Part shown: positions 1,172 through 62,720 of the stretch, piece after piece
How positions within the stretch are numbered: the stretch's first letter is position 1
Layout: each line of letters opens with the position of its first letter
Assembly: GCA_002269645.1 (NCBI GenBank)
Contig: NIVC01001376.1
Location: 238,176-302,175 of the forward strand
DNA from: Macrostomum lignano
Taxonomy: Eukaryota
Length of the DNA stretch: 64,000 bases
Reading direction: 5' to 3'
Made by a program: the position numbers and the translations under genes
The notes under the pieces: model-generated
Database searches by the model: none
Told to the model about the DNA's origin: nothing
Seen by the model: the letters and a program-made list of their open reading frames with translations, nothing else

Positions 1172-1590
1172 TGAGGGTCAGTCAAAAAGTAATGATAATA
1201 TTATTGTCACGAGCTTCAAGCTTCACGCACTAATCTACTTTTCTACATAATCCTCCTCCAGGGTCAGGCACTTCTCCATGCGGTGTCGCCATCTCTCCAG
1301 GCCATTCGTGTAGAAGGCAGGCGCTGCGCAGCAAGCCACTGTACGGTAGCCTTCTTGGCAGCCTCCTTGCTTTCATGTCGAACTCCCTTGATCGCCTCCT
1401 TCAGCTTTGGAAACAAAAAAAGTCTGAAGGAGCCAAATCAGGGCTGTACGAAGGATGCTGAAGTATTTCCCAGCGGAAATCTCGTAGAGTCTCCCGGCAC
1501 AGTCGAGAAGTGTGGGCTGGTGCATTGTCGTGGTGGAAGAGCACTCCACGGTGCAGCTTGCCAGGTCGCTTTTTGGCCAGTTTTAAAAAA
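1172..1590 (-). mobile_element. mariner (DD34D) transposon 3' end: C-terminal transposase fragment plus right TIR
   Basis: Manual minus-strand translation of 1590->1235 gives KKRPGKLHRGVLFHHDNAPAHTS..WEILQHPSYSPDLAPSDFFLFPKLKEAIKG..(frameshift ~1322)..RWRHRMEKCLTLEEDYVEK*, including the mariner YSPDLAPSD motif. TIR-like GAGGGTCAGTCAAAAAGTAATG starts at 1173. Absent from the ORF track because it has no start codon. Confidence 0.85.
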
Positions 1591-2492
1591 GTTGGTATTT
1601 GTTTTTACGTGTAAAAAGACACAATCCTACTTATAGTAGAATGAAAAGTCAGTTCATTGATTTTTGTCGCGCGCTATTTTAGGTTCGCCGAGGAAGTCGC
1701 GACGCGACGGTTGGTTGCCTTGAGCCTGAGCTTGAGCTTGATCTTGAGCCTGGGCTTGAGCTTTTTGGTATGGTGGCGGTGGCGGTGGCAAATCGATGTT
1801 ACCGATGTTGCGAGTCTGCAGAGTGACTGCTCCTTGCTCGTCGTAGTTTCTTTGGCGTGCTAGTTGTTGTTTGAATCGTCTTAATTTTTGGATGAATCTT
1901 TCGGTCTTCTTTAGCACTTCTTCTAAAGCGCCTAGGAGAACCTCGCCGTTCATTGACGAAATATGGTTTCGGGCTTTAGGGCTACTAAGACATCTCTATA
2001 AAGCGCAGCTGTCATCTGCGCCGTAGCACGCCTAGCTCTAACTGTGGCAAGGCCAGACATTTTCCAGTAAATTTGTGAAAAGCCCAGCGCAGCGACTAAA
2101 AATATCTACCCAATATATAAGGCTGCAGAAACATAGAGAGACAACTTTCCGTTTTGAGAACGATAGAGGACAGAAGGGACAATAGGAACAATGGAGATTG
2201 TACGGAGGGATGAAATTTGTTGTACAAAGGGATGAGGACAGTCACACAAAGAAATGTAATCCTTTTTGTCAGAATTCTGAGTAGATATCGGAAATTTGCC
2301 ACGTTTCTGCAAATTTCCTTCAAGCTGACAGATATTTGACGCATTATAACACACATATTTTATGTTTTTGTTGACGTTTATTTTCCTACTCGTCATTTAC
2401 TATTAGTAGTTTTTCAATCCTATTCGCTCTCAAAAAAGCTATTATTCTCTGAACTACCAATGCTTCATTCTTCCCAATCATAATCATTTAAA

Positions 2493-2911
2493 TATAAAGA
2501 GTTCGGTATAGTTAATATTACTAGCGAAGGAGAGTATATTAGCAACGTATGGTTCAGCAGCTACATCTGTCAGTCCTGGACGATTTACTATACTCGTAGC
2601 ATAAGAAATCTTACTGTCTTAGTATGAATGCGTACGCTGATGATCGGCTCTGATTATAACTATTGTATCTCACGTACATGCTAAGTTGATCTACGTCCAA
2701 GGCTGCCACACGCTTACAGAAAAGACTAGAACTTACATGTTTAAATTATGAGTCGCCTTTCTTGGAAACGGAAAGAAAATTAACAGAAACGTAATATTAG
2801 AATCCTAGAATAAATTGCGCACATAATTCAAACAGCTAAGGATCTGAATAAAGTTAAAATACACCATGTAAATAAACTAAATTTGAAATACAGAATTTTT
2901 AAACCGTTACA
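2493..2911 (-). mobile_element. solo LTR (~420 bp), copy 1
   Basis: Reverse complement of 51870-52290. Begins TGTAACGG on the minus strand and the other end is decayed (TTATA for TTACA). Flanked by the 4-bp duplication TAAA (2489-2492 and 2912-2915). Strand label is relative. Confidence 0.7.
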
Positions 2912-5732: not shown

Positions 5733-6480
5733 TTAAGGGCGACGCACGCGCGGCGGAGCGCGCATGTATATCATCTTAAAACTATTCTCAGTTTTGTCCA
5801 CCCGGAAGTAGGCCACACTGCTAATGGTCACGGAGCCGTTGGACTCCAAGTGGCGGCAGTAGCCGGCACCGTCCAAAGAACTGCAGCGCCAGCCGTTGGA
5901 TGGCAGTCCCCACGCCGTCCCCCCGTTCGCGGGTACCCCCGGTCCGTGTGGTTCGCGCAGATTAATCCCCTCCGCCGTACACGCCGTCCGGATGTCGTCA
6001 CTCCGGGCGTTCGTCATCACCCGCCGCGGCGAATAAGCAGTCGCCACGCATACGGCCCTGGCCACGGTGTCAAGCACATGCGTTTCTAAGCACGCTGAGC
6101 GCTGGCGGTCTGGCAGGGCCGCAGATCGCAGGACGGTTCTCATGGAGTTGAAGGCCGCCAAAGCGAGTCTACGGCGACACCTCAGGTCGTCGAAGGCGTC
6201 AACCAGGCCGCCAAGGTACACGAACTGCTGAACGCGCGGCAACAGCGTTGCCTGCCCATCAGCGCCTCGGCAGTAGATGTCTGCTTGGATGTTGGTGGGC
6301 ATGGTGAGCACGACGGTCTTTTGCGTGTTGATCACCAGGCCGACGCTCGCAGCAACGCCAACCAGACGGTCCAGCTGACGTTGGGCGCCCTCGACGGTTG
6401 AGGACAGCAGGGCGAGATCATCGGCGTAGCCCAGGATGCTGAGGCGACGCTTTGGCTTGCGGCGGCCCACTCGGCGTTGC
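5733..6480 (-). mobile_element. 5'-truncated non-LTR retrotransposon RT fragment (RTE-like)
   Basis: LGYADDLALL..GLVINTQKTVVL..VQQFVYLGG corresponds to RT domains 5-7. It is a GC-rich island in AT-rich flanks and degenerates after the RT. Confidence 0.8.
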
Positions 6481-6855
6481 AGCAGGATAACTTTATGTAC
6501 AATTCAGAACGGGTCAATTATGGATGGAATGTGCTTATCTGTTGTCGCAAGATGCAATAACTCGCTAAGCACCTCCGCCAAGTATCAGAACGTCGAGTGG
6601 CGAAAACACGGCTAGCCAGCCAGGCTGCTGGGGTGCTGAAATTGAACTCAATTGGTTGCATTGAACAGCATTCCTAAGTACTATCCTGCCAAGCCTACTG
6701 GCTGATTATGACACTTTTCTGAAACATCTACCACTGAGCTCTACTGTTGTAAACTCTATGGTATGATCATTAAATAAGGAAGAAGTTGAAGCGCAAGATT
6801 TTCAATCTGCGCTTGAAGATTGGGCTGGGCAGAACCCTCGGGCCGATTAATTTAT

Positions 6856-7175: not shown

Positions 7176-7192
7176 CGACCCAATGGTTCATA

Positions 7193-7766: not shown

Positions 7767-8126
7767 GACACTGAGAATAGATTTGGGACACTGAGAATAG
7801 ATTTAATAGATACTGAGAATAGATTTGAGACACTGAGAATAGATTTGGGACACTGAGAAATGATTTAAGACACTGAGAATAGATTTAAGACACTGAGAAA
7901 TGATTTATGACACTGATAATAGATTTTAGACACTGAGAATAGATTTGGGACACTGAGAATAGATTAATTACACAGAGAATAGATTGGGGTTACTGAGAAT
8001 AGATTTGGGACATTGAGAATAGATTTGAGACACTGAGAATAGATTTAGGACACTGAGAATAGATTCAGGACACTGAGAATAGATTTGCCATACCAAGAAT
8101 AGATTCAGGACACTGATAATAGATTG
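7767..8126. repeat. 20-bp tandem repeat GACACTGAGAATAGATTTGG, ~18 copies
   Basis: Directly visible. Variation is concentrated in the last few bases of the unit. Confidence 0.92.
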
Positions 8127-8133
8127 GGATACG

Positions 8134-8597
8134 AAGAATTAGCTGTTAGACACAGATAGATAGGGGATTAGATAGTGGGATTAGATAGATTAGATAGGGG
8201 ATCTAGACCTAATATATGTACAGCCTATAAAGAACTGCATATATTTTATACTCGTAACTAAATGCACATAGCTTAAACTCACTATATATAACTTATAACT
8301 AAGCAAATATTGATTATTGTGGAGCTTATTATCAACCTTAGTTCTAGGAAATGGAGCAATTTTAAAGTTCAAAATACCAAGAATTAGCTGTTGGACACAT
8401 ATATAGATAGGGAATTAGATAGTGGGATTAGATAGATTAGATAGGGGATCTAGACCTAATATATGTACAGCCTATAAAGAACAGCATATTATCTCATTCT
8501 CGTAACTAAATGCACATAGCTTAAACTCACTATATATAACTTATAACTAAGCAAATATTGATTATTGTGGAGCTTATTATCAACGTTAGTTCTAGGA
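8134..8597. repeat. direct duplication of ~216 bp (8134-8349 and 8379-8597)
   Basis: Both copies run AAGAATTAGCTGTT...GTTCTAGGA with few differences. Confidence 0.9.
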
Positions 8598-8867: not shown

Positions 8868-9769
8868 TAACATTGAAATTTCAGTAATCCTCTCTAAGAG
8901 TAATTATAGCACTACTACAGCATTATAGCGATTCCCTGCAAGCCTCGACATCGTAGGGATTCCCAAATGAATCTCTTAACTTCGACATGAAGCTTGTTTT
9001 ATTTTTTACATTACGCTTTTTTTATCAGCGATCCCTTCCCTGAGGAGGCATCAAATAATGTAATAAAAAGTTTTCAATAAACTACATGTAGCTTCTGACT
9101 TTAGCCTTGAAGTCTCATTTATACCCCCGTGAGCCTTGACATCTCAGCTATTCCCCCCCATAAACCTTGAAATCTAAAAAATCCCCTGTTATTCTGTTAA
9201 CCTTGAAACCCGATAAAATATAACCCTCAACCCACACCTGACCTAAACCTAACTTTAACCCAACCTAAAGCCTTGAAATCTCAGCAATTCTTCTCCCCTA
9301 AGCCTTGAAATTTTAGTGATTCCTTCTTTAAGAATCACAGCACTATAACGATTTCCACCAAGCTTTGACATCGTAGCAATTCCCAAACGAGTCTTTTAAC
9401 TTCGACATGTCTTTTATTTTATGTATACATAGTGCTACTTTTATTTTTTACATGACTCTTCTATCAGCGCCCCCCGTGGCGAGCCAACAAAGAATGCAAT
9501 AAAAAAATTGAGTAAAGTACATGAACTTTGAAGTAGCTTCTGACTATTGCTTTGACATCTCAGAAACCCCCCTCGTAATCTTACGAGCGTAGTTATTCTC
9601 TGAGAGCCTTTACGTCTCAGTTTTTCTCCACAGCACAGCATTATAGCTGCATTTAATTTTTACATGACACCCTTCATGTCTGACATGACGCTTCTTTTAT
9701 TCTACCATGATGCTTCTTAATTTTTTAAATGAAACTTTCATTAGTTTTTAAATGAGGCTTCTATGACAT

Positions 9770-11527
9770 TTTTCTTGACGCTTCTATGATTTTTATATGA
9801 CGCTTCTATGATTTTTTACATGACGCTTCTCTAATTTTTTACATGACGCTTCTATGATTTTTTACATGACGCTTCTATGATTGTTTACATGACGCTTCTA
9901 TGATTTTTTTTAAATGACGCTTCTATGATTTTTAAATGACGCTTCTACGATTTTTTACGTGATGCTTCTCTGATTTTTTACATGACGCTTCTATGATTTT
10001 TTAAATGACGCTTCTATGATTGTTTACATGACGCTTCTATGATTGTTTACATGACGCTGCTATGATTGTTTACATGACGCTTCTATGATTCTTTACATGA
10101 CGCTTCTATGATTTTTATATGACGCTTCTACGATTTTTTACATGACGCTTCTATGATTGTTTACATGACGCTTCTATGATTTTTTAAATGACGCTTTTAT
10201 GATTTTTATATGACGCTTCTACGATTTTTTAAATGACGCTTCTATAATTGTTTACATGACGCTTCTTTGATTTTTTACATGGCGCTTCTATGATTGTTTA
10301 CATGACGCTTCTATGATTTTTTACATGGCGCTTCTATGATTGCTTACATGACGCTTCTATGATTGTTTACATGACGCTTCTATGATTTTTTACATGACAC
10401 TTCTATGATTGTTTACATAACGCTTCTATATTTTTTTACATGACACTTCTATGATTGTTTACATGACGCTTCTATGATTGTTTACATGACGCTTCTATGA
10501 TTTTTTTAAATGACGCTTCTATGATTTTTAAATGACGCTTCTACAATTTTTACGTGACGCTTCTCTGATTTTTTACATGACGCTTCTATGATTTTTTAAA
10601 TGACGCTTCTATGATTGTTTACATGACGCTTCTATGATTGTTTACATGACGCTGCTATGATTGTTTACATGACGCTTCTATGATTCTTTACATGACGCTT
10701 CTATGATTTTTATATGACGCTTATACGATTTTTTACATGACGCTTCTATGATTGTTTACATGACGCTTCTATGATTTTTTACATGACGCTTCTCTAATTT
10801 TTTACATGACGCTTCTATGATTTTTTACATGACGCTTCTATGATTGTTTACATGACGCTTCTATGATTTTTTTTAAATGACGCTTCTATGATTTTTAAAT
10901 GACGCTTCTACGATTTTTTACGTGATGCTTCTCTGATTGTTTACATGACGCTTCTATGATTTTTTACATGGCGCTTCTATGATTGCTTACATGACGCTTC
11001 TATGATTGTTTACATGACGCTTCTATGATTTTTTACATGACACTTCTATGATTGTTTACATGACGCTTCTATGATTTTTAAATGACGCTTCTACAATTTT
11101 TACGTGACGCTTCTCTGATTTTTTGCATGACGCTTCTATGATTTTTTACATGACGCTTCTATAATTGTTTACATGACGCTTCTATGATTGTTTACATGAC
11201 GCTGCTATGATTGTTTACATGACGCTTCTATGATTCTTTACATGACGCTTCTATGATTTTTATATGACGCTTCTACGATTTTTTTACATGACGCTTTTAT
11301 GATTGTTTACATGACGCTTCTATGATTTTTTAAATGACGCTTCTATGATTGTTTACATGGCGCTTCTATGATTTTCATATGACGCTTCTACGATTTTTTA
11401 CATGACGCTTTTATAATTGTTTACATGACGCTTGTATGATTTTTTACATGGCGCTTCTATGATTGTTTACATGACGCTTCTATGATTTTTTACATGACGC
11501 ATCTATGATTTTTGCATGACGCTTCTT
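9770..11527. repeat. 21-bp minisatellite (consensus CATGACGCTTCTATGATTKTTTA), ~80 copies with higher-order duplications
   Basis: Directly visible. Variant GCTGC/ATTCTTT units recur at ~10057, 10652 and 11202, and the CGTGATGCTTCTCTG variant recurs at ~9958 and ~10921. Confidence 0.95.
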
Positions 11528-12152: not shown

Positions 12153-12751
12153 CACAGACAGACCATTTTTGTATTTTGTTTGAATTGCAAGCATTCAAAC
12201 ATACAAACCTTAGAGATTTAGTATATTTACTAGAGCGTTATGGACATTCATTCAAGCATACAAATATTAGAGATTTAGTATATTTAGATATAGATATCGA
12301 ACAATTTTAAAGTTCAAAATGCCACCCGCTGTTTGTGCAAGCGGCATTCACAATTTAAGCCAGGGCCAAAGAAGTGCAAGGAAGTGCCACTGGGATACAA
12401 TGGCACTGGCGATGCAATGGATAAATAATCAGCGGTTCCAGTGCGTGACAACGATTGTCTGGCGAGCGCCGGTAGGCGCGAGCCATAGACAAATCGTTGT
12501 CACGTGCTGCGACCGCTGATTCTTTGCATTGTTTTTCTGTTTGACGATCCTACAGACGATGCATTGTTTGTAGTAATGGATTGTTCTGCACTAAAAATGT
12601 GAATAATGATCGTCAAATTGCTAAACAATGGCACTGGTAGTGCAAGGAGGCGCCAAAAAGGGGGCATCCGGGGCATTTTGGAGTCCTTAAAGGAGAAGGC
12701 ACTATACCCTTGCTTAGAGGTGCTTAAGGGGGTGAACACGTGACGCCCACG

Positions 12752-14896
12752 CTAATGGCGCTCGTCGAAAGCACCTAATATATTTATTTTATTGAAAAAC
12801 TTGACATCTTTTACGTCTTTGGGACGGGGCCAAGTTTGGATCGCTTCAATCTTCGTCTTGTCTGTTTGAATGCCTTGTCGGCCAATCACCTGTCCTAAGT
12901 ACTGTAACTCGTAATGGAAAAGATTGCACTTTTTGGGTCTCAACTTTAGACCTGCGGCAATTAATCGCTGAAACACTTCTCTTAAGTGCTCTAAATGGTC
13001 GGCAAAATTTTGGGAGTAGGTTATTATGTCATCAATATAGGACATGGCGAACTTATGTTGGATTCCTAATAGTACTAAATTCATTAAGCGTTGGAAGGTT
13101 CCGGGGGCATTGGAAAGTCCTTGGGCCATTACTTGGTATTCAAATTGGCCTCTAGTTAGGGTGGAGAATGCGGTTCGATGTTTATCTTCTTCTTTGATGG
13201 GGACTTGCCAGTATCCTGAGTTTAAGTCTAGGCTGCTAAAGTATTGGCTACCAGTCAGGTGGGAGAAGGTCTCTTGAATATTGGGGAGGGGGTAGGGGTA
13301 GTAGTTAACTCTTGAGTTGAGCACTCGGAAATCGCTGACTATTCTAATGGAACCATCTTTTTTGGGGACAATCACTAGGGGGGTGGAGTAGGTTGAGTAG
13401 CAGGGTCTAATTAGGTTTTTGGCTAACATATCATCTAACTGGGCATCAACTTGCTTTTGCAAGTGTGGGGGGATGCGTCTGGCTGGGATTCTAACTGGGG
13501 TAGGGTCTTTGATAGAGATTTCGTGGGTTACTAAGTGTGTCAGGCCCATGTCTAATTCATTCTGGGAAAAGGCTTCACGGTTTTCTTTCATAAGATCAAT
13601 GACTGCTTTTCGCTGTTCATCTGACAGTTCGGGGCCAAGGCTCACTTCATCAATCCAGGAATCTTCAGTACATTGAGTCTGGTTGACTTTCACAGAGGGT
13701 TGGGAGCTGGGGGGTTGGGTTTGCCAATAGATTAAGTCTTTAGCTTTCATGGGTCTGGCTAAGCCAATTAGAGAAGTTTTAGTTAGATTCACGTCTACAG
13801 GGTGACGGTTAATAATTTCAACAATTCCTTTGCCTTCTTTCATAGTTACTAGGGTTGGAACCATTTCTAATGAGAAATCACGGGTTCGGACAGTATCGCC
13901 AATGGCTTCAATGGTCATGGGGGTGCCATAATTCGATTCACAATTCTTGGCTAATTTCACGGGTATTCGGAGGGCACTATTAGCTGGGATGATTACTCTT
14001 TCTTGAGTATAAACTCGACAAACTTTCACGGGTAGGCGGGTATACTGCATGGGTATACAGGTACCTTCGTTAAGCACTAGCATTCCTTTGGCTAGCTGAA
14101 TGCTTTCGCATTGGGATAGGAAAAATTCCATACCTAGAATATTGTCACAATCATGTCGGCATAGGAGGAAATCAACTTCGATTTGGATATCGCCAAACTT
14201 CACTTGAGCGGATACTTCTCCTTCTAATTGAACTGGGGTACCGTCAAATGTACTAATGCTTTTGCTAGTGTCTCGGATTTGATCGGCACGGAATAGCTTA
14301 GACCAGGTTGAGCGGCTCAGGAAATTATTTCTGGCGCCTGTGTCTAGCAAGAAATCAATCGATTCTTTCTGGATTTCGCCGACAATTACAGCTTCATAGC
14401 CTTCTAGCTTAGTCAGGTCGATTCGGGATGGGGAATTGGGTTTTGGCTTTTGTCGCTTCTTTGAGCGGGTTTCAGCACTGAATAAAGCATTATTGGTTTT
14501 AATCGCATGGGATACATGGGGTGCAAGCGCAGTGGGTACATGGGGTGCGGACGCGTGATGAGCAGAAATCGCATTGGTTACATGGGAAGCAGTCGCGTGA
14601 GCTGTAGTCGCATGGGGGTCATCGTACACATGGGGGTCAGGGGGGGCATTTGGCATGGCATCGTCGATTTCGTCAAAGGCAAGAAGTGAAAAATTATTGG
14701 GGGAGACAGATATCGCATTATTCACAGGCATTGGCTGTACATGGGAGGTTTTGCGGGGATAACGGAAACCATACTGGGGAGGTTGCCGGTATTTTGGTTG
14801 GGGGGCATTTTCGAATGATGGGGAGGCCGGAGAGTAAGCAGAATTTTGGCCTGAGGGGCGTGGCCTCTTAACTCGACCCTGGCTTCTCAGTTTCCC
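12752..14896 (-). CDS. pol: Gypsy pol (protease + RT), expressed by -1 frameshift, truncated
   Basis: Aspartic protease FLLDTG and RT motifs (LVIVPKKDGSIRIVSDFRVLN, FSSLDLNSGYWQV, GLSNAPGTFQRLM, YIDDII). I checked that the -1 frame is open from 14896 to the ATG at 14731. Confidence 0.92.
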   Translation of the reverse strand, partial: GKLRSQGRVKRPRPSGQNSAYSPASPSFENAPQPKYRQPPQYGFRYPRKTSHVQPMPVNNAISVSPNNFSLLAFDEIDDAMPNAPPDPHVYDDPHATTAHATASHVTNAISAHHASAPHVPTALAPHVSHAIKTNNALFSAETRSKKRQKPKPNSPSRIDLTKLEGYEAVIVGEIQKESIDFLLDTGARNNFLSRSTWSKLFRADQIRDTSKSISTFDGTPVQLEGEVSAQVKFGDIQIEVDFLLCRHDCDNILGMEFFLSQCESIQLAKGMLVLNEGTCIPMQYTRLPVKVCRVYTQERVIIPANSALRIPVKLAKNCESNYGTPMTIEAIGDTVRTRDFSLEMVPTLVTMKEGKGIVEIINRHPVDVNLTKTSLIGLARPMKAKDLIYWQTQPPSSQPSVKVNQTQCTEDSWIDEVSLGPELSDEQRKAVIDLMKENREAFSQNELDMGLTHLVTHEISIKDPTPVRIPARRIPPHLQKQVDAQLDDMLAKNLIRPCYSTYSTPLVIVPKKDGSIRIVSDFRVLNSRVNYYPYPLPNIQETFSHLTGSQYFSSLDLNSGYWQVPIKEEDKHRTAFSTLTRGQFEYQVMAQGLSNAPGTFQRLMNLVLLGIQHKFAMSYIDDIITYSQNFADHLEHLREVFQRLIAAGLKLRPKKCNLFHYELQYLGQVIGRQGIQTDKTKIEAIQTWPRPKDVKDVKFFNKINILGAFDERH

Positions 14897-15855: not shown

Positions 15856-15926
15856 TGTATTTCGGGGATAGGGGATGGAAATTATACTGGGGTTTGAGTG
15901 CGCGTTTCACCAGATTCAAATCCTTT

Positions 15927-19437: not shown

Positions 19438-19890
19438 GGTGGGGGCGATTTAGACTTGGTTGTGGTCGAAATTGTCCGGTGTTCACTTGATCTAATGTCG
19501 AATTTGAGCGGCTTAGGCCTCCAAATGGGCGCCGTCGTTATTTCGCACGAATTAAATCCGGAAAATTTGCGTGGGCGAATCCCGATAGAAACAACTCGTA
19601 GATACTCCGTCTGCCGGGGTCCTCAATTCCGGGGGAGGGTAGTTTTGGTCGTAGTAGGCGAGCGGTCTTCGTTTGGCGCGAGCGTTCAGATGGCGGGTCC
19701 TCAGACACCGTAAATTTAATGTGTCTCGTATTCTTGTTGGGTTACTAACAGTAGAGTAGCGCTGCCACCACCGTAATTTGCGTATTACGGAACGTTGAAA
19801 AGTCTCAGAGCTTGCTTCGAGGTGAGACTGGGTTATTTTATGCCCCACGGGCAAATGACTTAAGTTAAGCTATGGCTTTTAATCGAAGAA
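19433..19890 (-). repeat. unit A: LTR-like/PBS-like 5' end with palindrome
   Basis: Homologous to 20545-20990. GCTGCCACCA at 19761-19770 abuts CCGTAAT-N6-ATTACGG at 19771-19790. Confidence 0.55.
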
Positions 19891-33039: not shown

Positions 33040-37915
<4,876 letters not shown>

Positions 37916-48869: not shown

Positions 48870-50805
48870 ACCGAAAAAATCTAACTTGTTTAAACTGACG
48901 GTCGTAAACTGTTTAAATGCTTCGAGAATCTCGGACTTTGAGATGTAGGAACAGGTGATCGCACAGGTGGATATTACTTTGAAGAAGTCGGCCGCACAGT
49001 TGATAATAGCCCTCCGTGACATCACTTCCTTCTAGGCGAAGCGCTTTAGAGTTCCTCCGACCCCATCGATGGCACCTTTGCCATGTGATGTGGCAAAAAA
49101 GTTCCATGTTAGACGTCTGAGGTCAAACTTCGTCCGGGCCAGGACCATAAAGTACTGCATGAATCGACTCTTAAATTGAGACGATGGACCGTCGCTCCAG
49201 AAATGCACAGTCATTACTGGCTTTGTCAGACGCTGTGATCAAGAAATGTAGATAAAAAATTAGGAATTGAATGAGTAAGTAAACAAAGATGATCCATATT
49301 ATTAAATTAGTTAGCTATAAAAATAGTTATTCAAGATGACATACCCTTAAGAGAGTCTCAAGAAAGACCACAATGCTGGTCTTGGTGTGATCCGTAGTGT
49401 CGCTAATAATCGCAGACATCTCATGGTTGTCTGGACTAGTAGGTCCAGGATAGACACCAATAGTAAAAATAGTCACCTGCGTCTGTGACCAGTACGCACT
49501 TTGAGTTGCGTCTTGGTGGGCACATGAGTAATTTTCTGCAAAGTCGAAATGCAGTAGTAGCTCATGCTCTCCCAAATTGTCTTTCTGCGAGCGGTAAAAT
49601 GCTGCCTGCAGCACGCGAGTTCGTTCGTGAATAACAAATTTCGGCAGCAAGTCCAAGAGGACTTGATGGGCTTCGGCAACAGTTTTTGTCAGTGACACTT
49701 GCTCAACTCGATTAGAAATTGCATTGTTCTGCCAGAATCGGTAGGTGATTGGCATACCAAGCAGCCTGCTCATTAGGTGCTGGGATTCGCATGGCTGCTA
49801 GGTCTTTACAGAGTACACATGTGCCTTGAAGGCAATCTGGTGATGTCACGTTACAAAGAACGAACTCCTGCAGCCATTTTGAGCTATAGGTATTGCAGGC
49901 GCTATAATGGGTAGTTAATTGATGATAAGCTTCTTTTGGTATTGATAATTGATGAATTCATGTAAATTATGTACATATCATGTACTTTATAACAGAATTC
50001 ACAGAGAAATATACTTAAAAAAAACGGATTAATTCTTACCTATGAAAATTCTCATGTTGAGTGCAGCACCAGGCATGCAGTGGCGTTGAACCAACAGGGA
50101 GAATGTGTTTTGGACGAAGCGTGCAGAACTTCGAAAACGATATTCTGCTGCCTGCAGTCTCAGAAGAAAACAGTTCGTGATGTTCCCTGAGGCTCGCTGT
50201 CAAATACCGTTTTTGGACCTGCTGACCACCGACCTTAACGTACTCCTTTCGGCCTGGGGCCCATCACGACACATCTTCACGCAGGAAGTAGCTAGCAACT
50301 TGGTCACGAACGCCATCTGCCAGTCGAGAATAGCGACTACATTGAGCTTTGATGTCTGGCTGCAGCTGCAGGCCTACCATGCTGGCCAGTTTACGGACAA
50401 CTATAGCTTGCCGACTCGGAGTGCTTGGCAGTGCCAGATGAGCTCTGTGTACATGTCAGATGAATTAATTAGCTTTTAAAAGTTTCAAGGTCAATGAGAT
50501 AATTAGCAAATTAATAATTTGAAAAAGTTACTGCACCTGTTCACAGCACGTGACTCAGCCTGCCTAGAGCCATAGACCTGTTCGGACTGTTCATCATTAG
50601 CAACAACAGCGAGCCCATTGGCCAACTGTTGCTTTAACTCGCGGCTTTTTGCAGCACGAAGTCGAGCCTGTTCTCGTTGTTTCGTGATCGTCAGTGCATC
50701 TCGAAGTTGAGCTCGTCGCTCCCTGCTACGAATTTTCTCCTTTTCTTTGAGAACATCGCCGAGCCTTTTTCGATAATGCATTGAGTTCTCTGCTGCTGTT
50801 TTCAT
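48870..50805 (-). pseudogene. three-intron DDE DNA transposase (DFxENY / SDG / SHGKGxxDGxGG family; superfamily uncertain)
   Basis: Removing GT-AG introns at 50536-50445, 50039-49902 and 49344-49233 gives in-frame joins. Motifs: FLREDVS*WAPGRKE, FSKFCTLRPK, HFDFAENYS..QDATQSAYW..QVTIFT, FWSDGPSSQFK, FATSHGKGAIDGVGGTLKR. It has two stops and one frameshift. Confidence 0.85.
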
Positions 50806-51271
50806 TATGGCTGATCAGCTAGAATCAGTGGCTGAAATGATCAGTTCTAGAATGAGAAATGATACCTAGGCCTAGCTCAAAAACATTGATAGCAAATCTG
50901 TAATTACATAACACAATTCTTTTGTTAAAAAAACTAATTTTTTGATACCTTGGGGATGCTGGCTACGCTTAAATGATGGTCGTGACATGATGGTCGCACT
51001 TATCTTTGATGCTTTTTTTTCCAATGAAAGGATGCCTCTATATTGATAATTTTTAACAATTGTCTGACTATTAATGAACTAAATTAAAGAACTGATTTCC
51101 CGATTCATCCAAGACAAAACTATATTGATGTAAAATCTGATGGTCGCACTTTTACACTGCTGCAACTTTGTTCGTGTTCCCTACAACATACAATTTTAAG
51201 TTCTAGTCAAGAAAAAAAGGAATCAAGGCACTAATATAATGCAAAAATGAAAAAAATGCAAAAAATGCAAC

Positions 51272-51430
51272 TTAGACTGTTAGTCTTGCTTCTCGTGCTG
51301 CTGTTGCGGCGACTCCTGTTGCTTTTGCTCCTGTTCCTGTTGGGTTTGGAGTCGGTGGTTGCTTTGTCTTTTTTTCTGTGCCAACAATTCTTGGCCAGAT
51401 GGCCCAACTTGTTGCAGACGTAACACCTCT
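51272..51430 (-). pseudogene. gag-type CCHC zinc-knuckle fragment
   Basis: A frame not in the ORF track reads RCYVCNKLGHLAKNCW (51425-51384), followed by an R/S-rich tail. Confidence 0.7.
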
Positions 51431-51869: not shown

Positions 51870-52290
51870 TGTAACGGTTTGGAAATTCTGTAATTCAAAT
51901 CTAGTTTATTAACATGGTGTATTTTAACTTTATTCAAATCCTTAGCTGTTTAGATTACGTGCGTAATTATTCTAGGGTTTTAATATTACGTATTTTGTTA
52001 ATTTGGTTTCCGTTTCCAAGAAATGCGACTCATAATTTTAACATGTAAGTTCTAGTCTTTTTCTGTAAGCGTGTGGCAGCCTGGGACGTAGATCAACCTA
52101 GCATGTACGTGAGATACAATAATTATAATCAGAGCCGATCACCAGTGTACGCATTCATACTAAGACAGTAAGATTTCTTATGCTCCGAGTATAGTAAATC
52201 GTCCAGGACTGACATACGTATCTGCTGAACCATATACGTTGCTAATACTCTCTCTTCGCTAGTAATATTAAATATACCGGGCTCGTTACA
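51870..52290 (+). mobile_element. solo LTR copy 2 (TGTAACG...CGTTACA)
   Basis: Perfect 7-bp terminal inverted repeat and homology to 2493-2911. No matching TSD (CAAAG vs TCAAC). Confidence 0.75.
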
Positions 52291-52469: not shown

Positions 52470-53870
52470 TGGGAGCTGCGGGCTACCACTGCACCGCTAG
52501 AAAGCCATCCTGCGGTTCACCGGGGAATAGCAATGAGTTAGTCAGAAAGACACTGTTTTCTAATGCATTCAGGGTCGCAAATGCAATTGCTGCCCAGGAA
52601 CCCCTCAACCAGGTTCCTTCCGCTGAAGCCCTTCGCATTCGGCTTGGCAATAAATAAAAAATGCAAACCTCGCCGCTTGCAATGGCCTTTTCGTGCAAGA
52701 CTGCAGGAGCTCAATGTGGCGGTTGACACTGACTTGTGCTTTCATTGCCTTATTCTGTGAAGCAGTTTGTACATAGGTACATAAGTCGGGCCAAATGGCA
52801 AGTGCACGCTTAGCAACAGTGACATTTTCTAGCCAACGACAGGCAACAGAACTTTAGAGGGAACACACGTGTACCTGTGGCCTCAATGAAGTCTGCGACG
52901 TGCAGGCGCATTTTTGAACAGGTAGTAAAAGGAGCTCAAAATAGCTTTAATGTCCCAACCACTGACTAAGACACCCTGGTTAAATGCTCTGTGGACTCGA
53001 TGTAGAGAGCAGGATCAGCAGTGAATGATCTTTGCATCCGTAGCACTACTACTAGCAACATAGGCATCCAGTAGCTTGTGAAAGGCCCAGTTGACATTAG
53101 GTCCATCCATGCCCACTTGTAATATCTTGCTGACAGAGATGCCATTGAAAGATGCTAGGAAAGACTCCAAGAGATTTGCTGCAGTGCATGAAAGAAGAAA
53201 TTGAGAATCGAAGTAAAATGTCTTTACCGGAGGCTCAGTTGAGTCTTTCTCCTCAGTCCAGACACGAACATGAATGTCCATTTTTTCGATTGCTGCATGA
53301 TTTTGTTTAAACTCTCGTCAAAGTTAACAGAAAAGAACCGTTGGTTATTCAAAATAGTTGTTAACTGCTCCTTTAGAAGTGGTGCCAATCCGAAGTTGAT
53401 TATGTATCGGATTTTGTCGTAGCCAAGGGACATTTCATTTACAATGGCACTGTCAGTAAACATGGCTTTGAATCGATCAGTAATTCCAGCTGCTGAGCGA
53501 AATAAAAAGTGCTAGTCTACCATGTAAAAAAACCCATAGTAGCTTAGCTTGCTCAGCACTGTTTTTTAAGCCTTTTAGTACTTCGTCATTTGTAGCAGCA
53601 ACTGCAGCAACAGTACCGCCATTAGTAGTGCTGCCCGAGGGCATAAGGAATGCTCGAATACTTGGTGTTGTTGCGACTAGATGATTTAGATGAGTTTTTC
53701 TTTTAGCATGGGAAGTTAAGGCCGTCTTTCCCATATTGGAAAGTTCGACTTTCTTTTCGCAGCTTTTGCAGTAAGCTGCATTTCGATTGCTCGAGTAGGA
53801 AGTCACCCAGGGGAATTCCTCTTCCCACTTCTTGTCATAGTAAGTTGTTTTTTTGAAGTGGAACTCATAA
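52470..53870 (-). pseudogene. hAT-like transposase with BED-like finger, multiply frameshifted
   Basis: AYCKSCEK..SNMGKTALTSH; YIINFGLAP; FSVNFDESLNK; QVGMDGPNVN; LHRVHRAF; NAPARR..F; RWLEN. Confidence 0.8.
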
Positions 53871-55529
53871 GGCTGGAACTGGAAGGAGTTAGTAGTAAGG
53901 TGTACATAAAATTAAAATAATCTTTGTAACATTAGCAAGCTATTTTGTATTTGCAACAACTTATTTAGCTCGTATATAAGTCTACTAAAAACCTAAACGC
54001 AATATAAATTTATACAAAAGAATAGCAATAAATAGTGATTAAAACAAAATATAGACGGACCTTTCTATTAATGGCCTGGTTAATACCATATTATCATAGT
54101 ATGGACTATATATTTTACTGTCAGTGTGATTAGCACAGCAATTATAGATTAGCAATATGTACAAGCCAATAAATAATTCATTTAAGAACAAGTATCTGCC
54201 TATTTCAAATACCAGCTTTTAAAAATAACAATACATGGAACAAACAAAAATGATTTACTATTCTAGCTACTTAGTGCTATCGATTAGCCTCTTTCTTGTC
54301 TCACAATTTTTTCTCCAATTTTCTAATTGACTTTCAAATTTTCCCTGACTTCCTAAGAATTTCCCTGACTTTCCCTGACCGCGGCCACCCTGATCGCGCT
54401 TACGTAGAGCTGAGTTGGGAATTCCAGATTTCGATGACTTGCTTGAGCTGCAACGACTCGAGCAGACACAACAGCCAGCATATACTCGGAGGACTATTGT
54501 TAACAAGGGATGAAATTTGATGCACAAAAGGTGTGAGGAGACGAAACTTGGCCTCATTTCATGATGGCGGTATGAATGGGCTTTTAAAGAATTTATCTTT
54601 AAATTTGTCGGCTTAGTTGGTGACGAGCGAATGCTGTGACTATAGAAGCGTGTTAATCATTATTGGACATTATTTCAATCGTATCGCTCATCAACTTTCC
54701 AGGCTTCTAGGGGCCTTTCTCAGAAAAGAATGCCCCGCGAGTCTTTGAACTTCGCCATGCTGCGAAATTCTGGTTGGGCCAATGACGTGCCGGACACTGA
54801 TTGGCGACGCTTTCGCGCTTATGTGTATATCGCTTGTACAGCAGATAACCTGCTTACTGCACTGACTGTGGCTTTCATTGAGGATCCTGCTTTCAAGGCC
54901 AGGCCAAGCCAGGAGACAAGTGTGTTATCCACGATCAGCATTTTACGGGACAAAGAAATTTTATTAAGGTTGAATTGCGTTCCTTCTCCTATTTAATAAA
55001 TCTTCATTTTACCAGTACACCACTCGTCATACTTGTATGCACAAGTTGATTAGACATTCCATGGTCGTTGTGGGACAGTAAGTTAGTACTGTTAGTACAG
55101 TACGAAAACACTCGGAACAAAATGTGGTATAATAAGTAGTAAAACTGCGTAGAATAGTAAAATATTAAAGTAATTTTAGGGGCTTGACGTAAGTTGAGGG
55201 TAGAAATACGAGAATATCAATCAATTTTTTCGACTTGCTTCTTGACGATTTTTAAAGAATATTGTTTTAATGTTGTCTTTATTGAATTTTTTCTCTTAAT
55301 TGAATCTCTTAATTATTATTACGCCGCAAAAAGATGACAAAAGTAGTAAAAAGTTAAGTAGACCCGAAAGCAGATCGATTTGTCTACAAAAGCGGAACAG
55401 TCATTTCTTCTCGTTACAAACTACTTTTTTGCTTATTCGCATACTGTTCTGCGACATTTCGTAGAAACTGAGCTCCTAAGAAATTTAGCATTTTTCACTG
55501 CATTCGCCTACATTTCCTTTACGTCGTCA

Positions 55530-59199: not shown

Positions 59200-59293
59200 C
59201 CGTGTCTTAGCGGTCTAAGCTACTGGTTTTCTAGTTTGGATTTTTAGTGAATTTTATTATACTGGTTTGAGATTAGTAGATTCGCTGCCACCA
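59200..59293 (+). pseudogene. decayed tRNA-Leu-like sequence ending in CCA
   Basis: GTGTCTTAGCGGTCTAAG resembles the tRNA-Leu D-arm GTGGCCGAGCGGTCTAAG, and the sequence ends GCTGCCACCA. The middle does not fold as a cloverleaf. Confidence 0.4.
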
Positions 59294-60239
59294 GGCTTCC
59301 TGTTTCCTAATCCTAGTAGTTAGAGATAAAATGAGTGACACAGGAAAACCAATAATTAACGAAACTTATTATTTCAGAAGAGAGAGAAAATGTTAGCATG
59401 CAATGGTTACTGCTACTTTACTTAGTTAATTGTGCGAGAAATTAGGCATTGACTACATTGTGCACTGTCTCGGCATTGACTACCTCAACAGTTTTACTTT
59501 ACTTCCCTAAAATTTCCCTGCCTCTTACCAATTCCTTGATTAATGTTCTGAGTTAGCAAATTTTCGCAAACGGGATCACAAACGGATGCTTTCCCAAGAG
59601 CATTCATTCATTGTTAGGTATTTGGGCTTAGAAAAAATGCCCGGCGCCTCAGCTTTGACGGCTCTTACGCCACTGTATATTGTTTGGTTTCAAAATATTT
59701 TTACTAGTATTGGTTACAAATTGTATTAAATGATGTGGGAATTATAAAACAGTGCATCTATAGAAGTAAATCGAAGTACAGTATAAAACAAATCGAATGA
59801 TAATGGAGATTTGATATTTGAAATTCAATAAAACAGAATAAAATAAATTATATCCAATAAAACAGCTAAAAAAAGATGAGATAAAAAAGATGCAGGTGAT
59901 GAAGGATTGATGACAAAGGAGAGAGCACAAAGTACATGTAGAATCACTTCATTTGGTCATGGTTGGATTCTATAGTACAATGATTTAAGATTTAACATTG
60001 TGGGGTTAAAAGATATCTCAATTATTAGCAATGAAAATTTTGGTTACAGGTATTGTCATGGAGATTTGGGTAGTTAAAATATTGGTTAAAAGTATTGTCA
60101 TGGATATAGGAGAACTTCAAGTGACTACAGTTATCAGCCAATTGCACATTACTTAGTAACAGATGTAAATAGCATTCAATGAAAATTAATTTAAAGTGAA
60201 GCAGTGATGACTAGTTAAAGAGCTTTTATTTGGAATCAG

Positions 60240-62720
60240 CAACAATTACGTTGCTCAAATCATTACAAGTACATGTATCTCAAACATTTCTCAGGCGGGC
60301 CACTGCAGGCACCCGAAACCTCCTATCCCAAGGTTTTATATCAAGGTCGAAGCTGTGGACCCCGCTGGCAATAGTTTTTTTTGACCAGCGCTTGGCCAAG
60401 CCCCAGATGCGCTCTTTCATCATCGGCATTTTAGTAATGTGATGGAGATAGCTAGTCTAAGTGTAATTTGGAGCATCAGGAGTGATCTTAAGTGCCTTGT
60501 TCTGGAGAAGTTGACGTTTGGACAGCTGAGCGTCGGTAAGATGTATCAACACCGGTGCCCCATGTTTCCTAATCACAAAGTAGGATAACATGTAACTTTC
60601 AACAATAACGACAAAGGTGTCGCAACTCGTTAAGGTACACAGTGAGACAGAGAGTGCATAGAGACAACTAGTAAAGAATATTTACAGGTTCTGAATCTTG
60701 ATCCATGCATTCTAACAGAAGCCGTCCAGGCGCTAATCTTTCGTGTTTCGAATGCCTTTCGCTTCATGATGATTGGAATGCTAGAAGTTAATGGTATAAT
60801 TAACGTGCATCGCACTGCTGGCGTAACACACCGGATCAACAACACAAAAGCAACAACATCCGTGCTATAATAATTAGAGTCTGCCAGGGAGAGCAGGTCA
60901 GGGAGCAGACCAGGGAGCAGGCCAGGGGGAGCTCGGAGCAGGCCAGGGGAGCAGGTCAGGGAAGCAGACCAGGGGAGCAGGTCAGGGAAGCAGGTCAGGG
61001 AAGCAGACCAGGTGAGCAGGCCAGGAAGCTGGGAGCAGGCCAGGGGAGCAGGTCAGGGAAGCAGACCAGGTGAGCAGGCCAGGGGGAGCTGGGAGCAGGC
61101 CAGGGGAGCAGGTCAGGGAAGCAGACCAGGGGAGCAGGTCAGGAAGCAGACCAGGTGAGCAGGTCAGGGTAGCAGACCAGCGGAGCAGGCCAGTTGGAGC
61201 TGGGAGCAGGTCAGGGGGGAGCTGGAGCAGGTCAGGGGGAGCTGGAGCAGGCCAGGGGAGCAAGGCAAGCAGAGCTGGACATAGGAGTAGGCCAGTGACC
61301 CAGGCAGAATAGCAAGATATGAGGAACTAGGGGGTAGCCAAAGAAATGGACAGGAAAAGTGACTAGGAGGATATGGTCAGGCTAGTGAAACCTAGCCATG
61401 GAGTACAGATCAAGAGAAGTAGGCTAGGGGAGCAAGTTAGGGAGGGTAGGCTAGGCAGAGTAGGCTAATGGCAGTAGGCTTAGTGAGACGAGAGCAAGCT
61501 AGGAAGAGCAGTCAGAGAGAATAGACTAGGAGGAGACCAAGAAGAGCTAGATTATGAGAATAGGCAGCCAGGTAGTCAAAGAGTTGGCTAGGGAAAATCC
61601 AGGTAATTGCTAGACATTTTAAAAGGAAATATTGAATAATTGGTTTTGTATGGCTTGCTCTGTGAAATAGCTAATCTGGCTAGTTGAAATAATAATAGCT
61701 AGTTTAAGCTATAGCCAATATGTTATATAGCCAGGGATTTCTGATTTCTAATGTACTAGGTAAGAGTACTTAAAAATTTAAGTACTCTGCATGCAAATGA
61801 CCTTGAGGCTACAAGAAATATGAAAATCAAGAACTGTAATAAACTGCCAATTTATTAAATAGTATAGTATTCATATGGATAGCAGAATAGGTAGGCAAGA
61901 ATAATGCTGATTGTTGGTCTTATTGGATAACTAGGCCTAAGCTAATATGAAGTACAAATGACCAACAATATTTTGTTTGATTAAATTTGCTATTTATGCT
62001 CCTCCTGCAAGTGCAAGATGCAATTGGATTAATTCCATCATTGCATTTTCTGTCAATCACTTGTCAATTTTTCATTTGTCAAACAAATTTAAATCTGAGC
62101 CGTTTGATTCGTTAGCTAGCGTATAATATACTGGCCCCTATGCTATTTAAGTGCATAGCTCAGTATGATATTTCGGGTAGAAATCGTGTCGTCTTGACAC
62201 ACGACATGCTCGCAAGTGATTATTGGTCCCAATTGGTACATCTCTACCGATAATATCGGTGCCACTGGGGTGAGCTGCAACATCTTAAGCACATCATCGG
62301 TGATTCTGACAATGTTATCAAAGGTGCAATGGTCTTGTATATAGGCGCACTGATCTTCATTGATAATATTCAGGTTTTCCAGTATAGTTCGAATATTCCT
62401 AGCAAGTATTTTCACATAAAGTTTACCCAAGCATGAGGTTAGACAAATTGGTCTGTAGCTATCTACTTGATGTTTTGGTTTATTAGGTTTGGGAATCATT
62501 TTGACAATACCTGTTTCCAGAGCCGCGGGTAGTAGCCCAGAAGGGAGCAGGTATTGAAAAGTTTTGTGATAATTCTGATAGAGTTTAGTCTCAGGCCCTT
62601 TTTGAGAACAATGTTTGGGATATTGTCTGGCCCAGGTGCACCCCCAGACCTGAGACTGCTTATTGCCATAGTTACATCTATGTTGATGATTTCCATAAGG
62701 TAGGCTAAAGCATCATCACA
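60240..62720 (-). mobile_element. fragmented Jockey/I-group LINE RT split by a ~1.2-kb insertion
   Basis: 62105-62720 reads GAPGPDNIPNIVLK and IPKPNKP..SYRPICLTSCLGKL. ~60240-60530 reads QLLQNKALKI..APNYT*TSYLHH..MPMMKERI. Confidence 0.7.
60886..61300. repeat. G-rich 12-13-bp minisatellite (GGGAGCAGGYCA / GGGAAGCAGACCA)
   Basis: About 30 units directly visible. Confidence 0.9.

Follow-up and report, generated by a model that had tools for sequence, protein, structure and literature searches.

Co-oriented mobile-element relics in a 64-kb window of the Macrostomum lignano genome: a candidate uni-strand piRNA source locus

Introduction

Mosquito unistrand piRNA clusters hold endogenous viral elements that derive from RNA viruses. 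In Drosophila, flamenco and flam-like clusters carry fragments of transposable elements (TEs) on one strand; these flam-type loci, 0.2-1 Mb long, show specific enrichment of antisense Gypsy/env-carrying elements, and Gypsy drives the strand bias (van Lopik et al. 2023, PMC10643416). Flam-like loci were discovered by a strand-bias scan, the same logic that is applied here, and TE strand bias is an accepted route to the de novo discovery of unistrand clusters (PMC10643416). For M. lignano itself, 436 piRNA clusters are known, both unidirectional and bidirectional, which make up 0.63% of the genome and have a median length of 9.7 kb and a maximum of 93.7 kb, and most piRNAs bound by Macpiwi1 are antisense to TEs (Zhou et al. 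2015, RNA 21:1885; PMC4604429).

We analyzed a stretch of 64 kb of M. lignano DNA (the window), which an initial annotation had proposed as a candidate flamenco-like uni-strand cluster. Like the unidirectional clusters of the same species, the window is TE-rich and within their length range, and a plus transcript of it would give TE-antisense piRNAs, as in Macpiwi1. It would be unusually long by comparison; given the median of 9.7 kb, a 61-kb locus would be among the largest. With flam-type loci it shares TE fragments on one strand. In contrast to flam, it comes from a different phylum, LINEs and DNA-transposon relics predominate in it, and its one Gypsy relic is truncated and lacks env; with a single Gypsy relic its content is therefore not flamenco-like, and the name does not apply in its strict sense of antisense Gypsy/ERV enrichment. 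The likeness to mosquito clusters lies in a virus-derived fragment, here a double-jelly-roll capsid gene, amid co-oriented TE fragments, but this fragment is a single relic of Polinton/Maverick (DNA element) type. The published M. lignano clusters were delimited with 28-32-nt reads that map uniquely, whereas the window is a candidate on sequence grounds. Finally, TE "graveyard" DNA (intergenic or heterochromatic) shares with the window truncated and frame-shifted copies, many families, satellite arrays, and an absence of host genes, but mixed orientations are expected there, whereas here all 10 robust relics, and all 14 when weak ones are counted, lie on one strand. A one-strand piRNA "transposon trap" would look like the window; coincidence could too.

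Results

All recognizable coding relics lie on the minus strand

In the M. lignano genome, the window is a region poor in genes where transposons have accumulated (Table 1). It contains truncated copies of at least 10 unrelated mobile-element families, all coding on the minus strand. They comprise mariner, Tc1/IS630, and two unnamed families that resemble DNA transposons, together with three or four non-LTR elements, one Gypsy relic, a gag knuckle, and one capsid gene of Polinton/Maverick type. Orientable TE- or virus-type coding relics extend from ~1.27 kb to 62.7 kb and on to the window end, and no recognizable plus-strand gene was found within the 64 kb when both strands were scanned alike.

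Table 1. Features of the window (coordinates are window positions)
Feature	Position	Strand	Remarks
Mariner transposase relic	1267-1604	-	C-terminal third only; two reading frames, 1 frame switch
~360-bp non-coding repeat	2548-2911	.	Second copy at 51870-52234, opposite orientation; 90-95% complementary
Non-LTR RT relic	5736-6503	-	C-terminal half of RT domain in a 256-aa open segment
Other tandem arrays	7767-8597; 26989-27764; 60883-61262		Tandem Repeats Finder
23-bp satellite array	9683-11526	.	~80 copies; Tandem Repeats Finder
Gypsy/Ty3-type relic	12689-15906	-	gag frame 14890-15906 and protease-RT frame 12755-14908, both open
Inverted-repeat unit, 1.77 kb	17665-19434	.	Flanking 137-nt inverted repeats, 97% complementary
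Tc1/IS630-type DDE transposase relic	17853-18437	-	2 blocks, 1 frame switch, 132/380 residues covered
C2H2 zinc-finger frame	18534-19622	-	363 aa open; several fingers; zf-C2H2 at 9.5e-9
TMEM132 C-terminal (transmembrane helix) match in open segment	28104-28409	-	PF15706
LOA/I-clade LINE	32955-37915	-	ORF1 36857-37915, open; ORF2 32955-36869
Decayed non-LTR RT relic	38758-39096	-	RVT_1 0.16, profile positions 3-44; weak
Protein-like open segments	40787-42024	-	Candidate relic only; "hAT" of the initial annotation
Double-jelly-roll capsid gene relic	46183-47198	-	Polinton/Maverick type; one open segment
First unnamed-family relic	48864-50811	-	4 blocks, 3 frame switches, 506/680 residues covered
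CCHC zinc knuckle, gag-type relic	51234-51428	-	zf-CCHC 1.6e-4, 22 bits vs. cut-off 20.8
Second unnamed multi-copy family relic	52608-53872	-	5 blocks, 4 frame switches, 339/845 residues covered
Jockey-like non-LTR relic	60283-62726	-	RT N-terminal part 62146-62726; ORF2-tail-like segment 60283-60456
Second LINE-tail-like segment	63758-64000	-	Runs off window; weak, motif-level only

A symmetric Pfam scan of all six frames, covering all stop-to-stop segments of 40 aa or more at E<=0.01, detected TE domains at at least nine loci on the minus strand and 0 Pfam families on the plus strand of the whole window. The minus-strand families were RVT_1 (four loci), aspartyl protease, Exo_endo_phos_2, RNase_H, a DJR-like capsid domain, DDE_3, zf-CCHC, and zf-C2H2. 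In relaxed scans (E<=1; twenty long segments from each strand), TE-type matches were again confined to the minus strand, with none on the plus strand. When ~300 retrieved relatives were compared with the window by tblastn, 728 of 728 HSPs fell on the minus strand: 372/372 for 144 retroelement proteins, 313/313 for 150 relatives of two DNA-transposon-like relics, and 43/43 for 13 relatives of a third family, that of the relic at 52608-53872. There were 11 open segments of 190 aa or longer on the minus strand versus 1 on the plus strand, the sole plus segment being antisense to a minus frame.

No relic is a copy of another (blastp among window segments), and we therefore counted the relics as independent events; there is also no segmental duplication. 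The tally of well-supported relics is 10 minus to 0 plus (two-sided binomial p=0.002), comprising the mariner, two non-LTR RTs, the Gypsy gag-PR-RT, the Tc1/IS630 DDE, the LOA/I-type LINE, the double-jelly-roll capsid gene, the CCHC knuckle, and two unnamed multi-copy gene families; adding four weaker minus relics gives 14:0 (p=1.2e-4). The strand bias of coding relics is thus real, but it is carried by fewer elements than the ~18 initially claimed. Of that claim, minus orientation stands for every verifiable coding relic, and the count falls to 10 robust relics, or 14 with the weak ones; the two Helitron ends and two PBS units, which offer no signature to check, stay candidates only. About five short plus scraps had been listed as well; the scans gave no coding relic on the plus strand, and the plus-pointing scraps found were an inverted-repeat arm (17665-17801) and the ~360-bp non-coding repeat. 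Thus many unrelated TE families, co-oriented at the protein level in a TE-dense region, are upheld, and the proposed piRNA reading is supported in part. Orientable relics occupy only ~16 kb (25%) of the window; the remaining 42.7 kb (approximately two thirds) has no annotation and a symmetric composition (AT skew -0.015).

Retroelement relics

The best preserved retroelement is the LOA/I-clade LINE, whose ORF2 has endonuclease, RT, and RNase H (Exo_endo_phos_2 2e-21; RVT_1 6e-12 and 3e-13; RNase_H 9e-13) and, compared with related elements, 2 frame switches. Judged by its 90%-100% identity to M. lignano UniRef proteins, which also identifies the window as M. lignano DNA, it is a member of a young M. 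lignano family; "loa-3" is among the relatives, and tblastn also supports the assignment. The Gypsy relic matches RVT_1 (3.7e-34), gag-asp_proteas (3.2e-8), and Retrotrans_gag (0.002), and gives one tblastn block (1.4e-140, PR-RT part only). It lacks the RNase H and integrase part (one 3' truncation), and a direct-repeat search detected no LTR pair. A separate "integrase relic" reported in the initial annotation was not confirmed by tblastn with retroelement proteins.

The other retroelement relics are more fragmentary. The RT relic at 5736-6503 lies in a GC-rich stretch (0.63) and matches RVT_1 at 1e-4 (profile positions 146-202) and LINE proteins by tblastn at 2e-6. The motifs of the decayed RT relic at 38758-39096 are spread across three frames, with neighboring RT-like segments on the same strand. 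The Jockey-like relic (RVT_1 6.3e-5; tblastn 1.5e-9) is akin to the LINE RT at 34.9-35.9 kb and is interrupted by a 13-bp tandem array; its tail-like segment and the one at the window end are homologous and in the same orientation (blastp 1e-5).

DNA-transposon-type relics

The mariner relic aligns with residues 230-289 of the 345 of Mos1 transposase (phmmer against PDB, E=3.6e-16) and matches Pfam DDE_3 at 0.007. For the Tc1/IS630 relic, phmmer reaches 1.1e-23 to P0153 and tblastn 7e-30; its relatives carry DDE_3, which the relic itself matches at 0.027 in the relaxed scan. The 1.77-kb inverted-repeat unit, one arm of which is the plus-pointing scrap mentioned above, encloses this relic and the C2H2-finger frame. 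That frame, at 18.5-19.6 kb, had been labeled "RTE", but only C2H2 fingers could be shown in it, and a PDB search returned zinc-finger proteins exclusively.

The first unnamed relic belongs to a very large family (phmmer 1.9e-38; 1874 representatives at E<=1e-3; tblastn 3e-115, all HSPs minus), whose members showed no Pfam domain, save one relative with an Ulp1 protease domain; it is presumably a transposase of an unnamed family. The second (tblastn 8e-41, all HSPs minus) had been called "hAT" and instead belongs to a large unnamed family that elsewhere forms single ORFs of ~800 aa, with 88 related loci in metagenome contigs; no Pfam family was found in 10 full-length relatives, nor any match in a profile search of PDB. 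The same label for the open segments at 40787-42024 found no support: these had no Pfam match at E<=1, fell outside the top 150 of a representative search, and did not match the 52608-53872 family.

Discussion

Tentatively, the most likely reading of the window is a uni-strand piRNA source locus, which would entail transcription of the plus strand, production of piRNAs, their loading into PIWI proteins, and an effect on the elements. A long plus-strand precursor, made by RNA polymerase II, would be cut to 28-32-nt piRNAs starting with U and antisense to every captured element. In PIWI proteins of the Macpiwi1 type, such piRNAs would guide the silencing of active copies elsewhere, for example, those of the young LOA/I-type LINE family. 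The orientation bias would arise as insertions giving antisense piRNAs are retained. Against this reading stand the low base rate (clusters are 0.63% of the genome), the confinement of orientable relics to ~25% of the window, the one non-coding family present in both orientations, and a content that is not Gypsy/ERV-dominated; further, the minus TMEM132_C match could be a minus-strand gene fragment inside the region.

Coincidence, which we consider rather unlikely, would make the window ordinary intergenic DNA, rich in TEs, in a genome of which repeats make up more than half; here, 10-14 independent insertions happen to share an orientation and a scan picks the extremes. The robust tally is only 10, and p=0.002 corresponds to ~23 of ~12,000 windows by chance in a 764-Mb genome; the strand statistic is modest because the window was selected from many by a scan. 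The initial 18:5 count gives p=0.011. The symmetric composition of the unannotated two thirds, the repeat family found both ways round, and the small genomic share of piRNA clusters also favor chance. Yet no method that treated the strands equally gave a plus-strand coding relic, and with the weaker relics included, the 14:0 tally (p=1.2e-4) leaves ~1.5 expected windows. DNA transposons, LINEs, the LTR element, and the capsid gene are all co-oriented, and classes this diverse leave no shared insertion mechanism to explain the bias.

That intronic retroelements in animals are biased antisense is well established, and it counts for a further explanation, a long plus-strand non-piRNA transcription unit (a giant host intron or lncRNA), which we hold to be improbable. 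Sense insertions would present splice and polyadenylation signals of their own to the transcript and would have been purged by selection, leaving antisense minus copies. The observed minus orientation is what this predicts, and exons of <40 aa or beyond the window would escape protein scans. However, the scans gave no plus-strand protein domain or exon-like match, and bias in introns tends to be partial, with DNA transposons showing it least; here, four DNA-transposon-type relics are also all minus. In M. lignano, the mean intron is 1.1-1.4 kb and the mean gene 7.5-9.4 kb (PMC5730564); an intron of at least 61 kb would be exceptional, and the plus-strand intron is thereby weakened.

Least probable by far is an orientation set at insertion, by target-primed reverse transcription favoring one replication direction in a region replicated from one side, or by a minus-strand host gene with sense elements: four or five relics are non-LTR elements, which insert in this way, and the TMEM132_C match on the minus strand is above the Pfam cut-off, but replication-linked bias is mild where known and inapplicable to co-oriented cut-and-paste DDE transposons and the capsid gene, the TMEM132-like segment has neither relatives among the 5.8 billion proteins searched nor, in the Pfam scans, a second TMEM132 domain on its strand, and selection normally acts against sense insertions in genes.

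Other features of the window

The TMEM132_C match itself spans 28167-28253 (9.5e-7, 28.9 bits vs. cut-off 27). A search of 5.8 billion proteins, the M. lignano proteome among them, found no relative of the segment, and Pfam scans gave no further TMEM132 domain on the minus strand; the segment may be a host-gene fragment. The two copies of the ~360-bp repeat lie in opposite orientations, and at least one family is therefore present both ways.

The initial annotation had placed a "Polinton module" in the window. Its capsid domain is borne out (PF21738 DJR-like_dom, 7.6e-8, 32.4 bits vs. cut-off 27), and no other Polinton gene was found. The relic has no relative in IMG/VR or PDB, and its match covers profile positions 94-292 of 316, which leaves the N-terminal part unconfirmed. 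A weak 69-nt inverted repeat lies at 42769-42837 / 47210-47278.

Strand survey of coding relics

Coding relics were surveyed with both strands of the window treated alike: the six frames were split into stop-to-stop segments of at least 40 aa, with X marking gaps, and were compared with Pfam at E<=0.01. All of the transposon and virus-type domains recovered in this way lie on the minus strand (see table), and the plus strand (27 chunks, ~24,800 aa, within the 64-kb window) yielded no Pfam family at that threshold. Three additional minus-strand matches, all to DUF3915, were discarded as artefacts of (TC)n repeats. A relaxed scan, in which 20 long minus-strand and 20 long plus-strand segments were each run singly at E<=1, added DDE_3 (0.027), Retrotrans_gag (0.002), zf-CCHC (1.6e-4, over its cut-off), and a weak RVT_1 (0.16) on the minus strand, and no TE-like match on the plus strand.

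Protein-to-DNA searches gave the same orientation. When 144 LINE and Gypsy proteins were compared with the window by tblastn, the 372 resulting HSPs were on the minus strand only, as were all 313 HSPs from 150 relatives collected by a HMMER search in which four minus-strand segments were queried against 1.84 billion representative proteins. When tblastn was run at low stringency to look for an integrase relic or for scraps of retroelements on the plus strand, it returned only noise on both strands. In a count independent of annotation, the minus strand has 11 open segments of at least 190 aa and the plus strand has one, which is antisense to a 363-aa minus-strand frame. The pieces that do point to the plus strand are one arm of a 137-nt inverted repeat and one ~360-bp non-coding repeat that occurs both ways round.

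Thus, the strand bias of transposon and virus relics reported in the initial annotation is real, and the co-orientation stands; its extent is smaller than the ~18 minus-strand elements claimed. A robust set, in which every relic reached E<=1e-4 in one or more of the searches, contains 10 minus-strand relics and none on the plus strand (two-sided binomial p=0.002), and inclusion of four weaker relics gives 14:0 (p=1.2e-4); the same test on the original count of 18:5 gives p=0.011. Apart from tandem arrays, two pairs of inverted repeats, and a distant similarity among reverse transcriptases, comparison of the window with itself found nothing, indicating that the relics are separate insertions of unrelated families rather than duplicated blocks.

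Positions, strands, and supporting matches of features in the window (Pfam domains at E<=0.01)
Feature	Position	Strand	Match or description	Set
Mariner relic	1267-1604	minus	DDE_3, 1428-1583; Mos1 and Sleeping Beauty matches, 1404-1604	robust
RT relic at 6 kb	5736-6503	minus	RVT_1, 6210-6446	robust
Gypsy relic	12689-15906	minus	RVT_1 (3.7e-34) and aspartyl protease, 12.9-14.4 kb	robust
Tc1/IS630 relic	17853-18437	minus	DDE_3-bearing relatives	robust
C2H2 frame	18.5-19.6 kb	minus	C2H2 fingers, 18.9 kb	weaker
TMEM132_C segment	28104-28409	minus	TMEM132_C, 28167-28253 (28.2 kb)
LOA/I-clade LINE	32955-37915	minus	RNase_H, RVT_1, Exo_endo_phos_2, 33.5-36.4 kb	robust
RT relic	38.8 kb	minus		weaker
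Frames at 40.8-42.0 kb	40787-42024	minus		weaker
Capsid-gene relic	46183-47198	minus	PF21738, double-jelly-roll capsid domain, 46204-46797 (46.2-46.8 kb)	robust
Unnamed family, 48.9-50.8 kb	48864-50811	minus	HMMER query segment 49330-49797	robust
CCHC knuckle	51.4 kb	minus	CCHC knuckle	robust
Unnamed family, 52.6-53.9 kb	52608-53872	minus	segment 53018-53317	robust
Jockey-like relic (RT at 62 kb)	60283-62726	minus	RVT_1, 62.3-62.5 kb	robust
LINE tail	63.8 kb	minus		weaker
Non-coding repeat, ~360 bp	2548-2911; 51870-52234	opposite orientations	two copies
Tandem arrays	7767-8597		20-bp and 248-bp units
Satellite	9683-11526		23-bp unit
Unit between 137-nt inverted repeats	17665-19434		1.77 kb
Tandem arrays	26989-27764		189/369-bp units
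Inverted repeat, 69 nt	42769-42837; 47210-47278		4.4 kb apart
Tandem array	60883-61262		13-bp unit, GC-rich

Retroelement relics

The LINE shows the domain order of the LOA/I clade in its ORF2 (Exo_endo_phos_2, then RVT_1, then RNase_H), and its relatives include a "loa-3" protein. ORF1 is open and ORF2 carries two frame switches relative to relatives; a 580-aa open segment at 33264-35003 matches dozens of M. lignano UniRef proteins at 90-100% identity, which traces the window to this free-living flatworm or a very close relative. In some UniRef gene models of M. lignano related to this segment (P0035, P0059, and P0101), the RNase H region is fused to host-type domains (RGS; Ras/Arf, named "E3 ligase"; amino-acid transporter), so that sequence of this LINE family contaminates the public gene models of the species.

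The Gypsy relic retains gag, protease, and RT in canonical order, with the gag and protease-RT frames open. Neither RNase H nor integrase was found by tblastn with relatives, a direct-repeat search found no LTR pair, and env is also lacking; from its sequence, this Gypsy/Ty3-type element is a truncated relic (3.2 kb, 5% of the window). The integrase relic listed in the initial annotation was not recovered by tblastn with integrase-bearing pol proteins or at low stringency. In the M. lignano genome, retroelement relics form conspicuous islands of high GC: the RT relic at 6 kb has a GC content of 0.63 against ~0.40 in its surroundings, and that of the LINE is 0.56. In the Jockey-like relic, ~24 copies of a 13-bp unit lie between the RT part and the tail. 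No copy of any element in the window looks functional.

DNA-transposon-type relics and two unnamed families

The mariner relic matches Mos1 transposase (3.6e-16, PDB search) and Sleeping Beauty, placing it among Tc1/mariner DDE/DDD transposases, of which it preserves the C-terminal third only, with one frame switch. The Tc1/IS630 relic belongs to the same group by its DDE_3-bearing relatives (1.1e-23, HMMER), against which it aligns in two blocks with one switch. It sits beside the 363-aa open frame, which encodes several C2H2 zinc fingers, inside a unit flanked by 137-nt inverted repeats (97% complementary), and this unit may be a transposon carrying a zinc-finger gene. Only zinc fingers were found in the 18.5-19.6 kb frame, which had been labeled RTE.

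Two families are without a name. The query segment from the 48.9-50.8 kb relic belongs to a huge family (best match 1.9e-38; 1874 representatives at E<=1e-3, HMMER) whose members are typically 450-1000 aa long and have no Pfam model, with an Ulp1 protease domain in one relative. The relic aligns with relatives in four blocks separated by three frame switches (506 of 680 residues), and the family resembles transposases that have yet to be described or modelled. The 52.6-53.9 kb relic is more decayed (five blocks, four switches, 339 of 845 residues). Its segment at 53018-53317 has at least 88 related loci in metagenome contigs, where the family is encoded by single ORFs of ~800 aa with many invariant columns; 13 long metagenome ORFs match the window at this relic only (8e-41, tblastn). 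Neither the relic nor 10 full-length relatives matched a Pfam family, and a profile of the relatives had no match in PDB. PDB searches for the Tc1-like relic, both unnamed families, and the capsid relic were likewise negative.

The 52.6-53.9 kb relic and the frames at 40.8-42.0 kb had both been called hAT. We found no hAT dimerisation domain, BED-type finger, or likeness to a solved hAT transposase in either, and the latter frames matched nothing in Pfam (E<=1), among the best 150 relatives from a representative-protein search, or in comparison with the 52.6-53.9 kb family. The lack of a sequence match is compatible with a distant hAT fold.

A capsid gene of Polinton/Maverick type

The capsid-gene relic matches the double-jelly-roll major capsid protein typical of Polinton/Maverick elements over its cut-off (7.6e-8), in a partial alignment that covers profile positions 94-292 of 316. 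No domain of a protein-primed DNA polymerase B, a retroviral-type integrase, a packaging ATPase, or a maturation protease turned up on either strand in Pfam scans or in neighbouring frames at E<=1, and an IMG/VR scan found no relatives of the capsid gene. Of the Polinton module proposed initially, the partial capsid gene is the only detectable component. Polinton/Maverick elements also have long terminal inverted repeats; here the only pair is weak, 69 nt long and 72% complementary, with its arms 4.4 kb apart, and it brackets a 4.5-kb stretch that holds the relic and several small minus-strand frames.

A candidate piRNA source locus and its rivals

Uni-strand piRNA clusters are defined by 24-32-nt 1U small RNAs from one strand only, and by a long precursor with a promoter at one end, running opposite to the TE coding strand. 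They are also dense in TE fragments of many families with one dominant orientation, and here 64 kb contain at least 10 unrelated families, every one of them truncated or carrying frame shifts, at 10:0 or 14:0 at the protein level, with one non-coding repeat lying both ways. TE strand bias is accepted as the mark of unistrand clusters at the sequence level, and clusters have already been discovered by it (PMC10643416). In M. lignano, 436 piRNA clusters, both uni- and bidirectional, cover 0.63% of the genome (median 9.7 kb, maximum 93.7 kb), and Macpiwi1-bound piRNAs are for the most part antisense to TEs (PMC4604429). That the window would be a unistrand piRNA source locus is a possibility we take seriously, at somewhat less than an even chance. 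The fuller proposal, that it would represent most of a >60-kb uni-strand cluster, not centred on Gypsy, which traps LINEs, cut-and-paste transposons (including two unnamed superfamily-level families), and a Polinton/Maverick-type capsid gene, strikes us as rather unlikely.

Several considerations count against a piRNA source. It has a low prior, and a scan is what singled out the window; genome-wide, ~23 windows at 10:0 and ~1.5 at 14:0 are expected by chance, to be set against published clusters that total ~75 window-equivalents and are mostly short. Further, sequence with a readable orientation makes up only about one-quarter of the window, and the rest shows no compositional asymmetry; AT skew, used as an annotation-free orientation marker across the unannotated 43 kb, gave no signal. 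The content of the locus also departs from that of flamenco. A rough Bayesian sketch returned posteriors from <0.1 to >0.9, varying with the prior and the relic count. Chance co-orientation of independent insertions is in our judgment doubtful but carries real weight. If it is correct, the window is a cautionary result, as repeats make up over half of this genome and some two dozen 64-kb windows should then reach a 10:0 tally. Strand bias alone is therefore insufficient to call a cluster.

Another long plus-strand transcription unit, from which sense insertions were removed by selection, would leave the same bias and is improbable. The M. lignano assembly (764 Mb, more than half repetitive) has a mean gene length of 7.5-9.4 kb and a mean intron length of 1.1-1.4 kb (PMC5730564); because introns are ~1 kb and Pfam scans gave no plus-strand exon-like match, a giant plus-strand intron is an unlikely form of such a unit. 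Orientation set at insertion, or by a minus-strand gene, is very improbable.

Comparison with flamenco and implications

The locus had also been described as flamenco-like. In flam-type loci, the strand bias is driven by enrichment of antisense LTR/Gypsy elements carrying env (PMC10643416), and such loci further extend over hundreds of kilobases and are expressed in somatic (follicle-cell-like) tissue (van Lopik et al. 2023, PMC10643416). The window, in contrast, holds a single truncated Gypsy relic among relics of non-LTR or DNA-transposon type, and thus is not flamenco-like in content. Uni-strand clusters are already reported in M. lignano, and this kind of locus is not new; as a piRNA source, the window would be unusual chiefly in its length and mixed cargo.

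Flies and mosquitoes have well-studied uni-strand piRNA clusters; to our knowledge, sequence-level descriptions from Spiralia are scarce. Flatworm PIWI proteins are active in germ cells and also in pluripotent stem cells of the soma. If the fuller proposal of a >60-kb cluster is right, the flatworm piRNA system would preserve a heritable memory of DNA-virus-like elements and not of retroelements alone. The mixed cargo of a confirmed cluster, with its capsid gene of Maverick type and its transposon families without a database model, would reveal targets of that system, and the window would be a ready locus for comparative work, in a neopolyploid genome that has duplicated (homeologous) copies.

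Non-coding landmarks and an orphan match

GC content across the window is patchy (0.31-0.58), and tRNA and Rfam scans for SINE, PBS, and ncRNA landmarks returned nothing. The Helitron ends and PBS units listed in the initial annotation could not be confirmed. The TMEM132_C match, to a transmembrane helix, scores 28.9 bits against a curated cut-off of 27. The segment that contains it has no relative among 5.8 billion proteins and no further TMEM132 domain nearby, which makes this an orphan match and leaves a minus-strand host exon unsupported. The two copies of the ~360-bp non-coding repeat, 49 kb apart and 90-95% identical, represent the sole family seen on both strands. The 23-bp satellite comprises ~80 copies (86% matches) and has a strong plus-strand excess of T.
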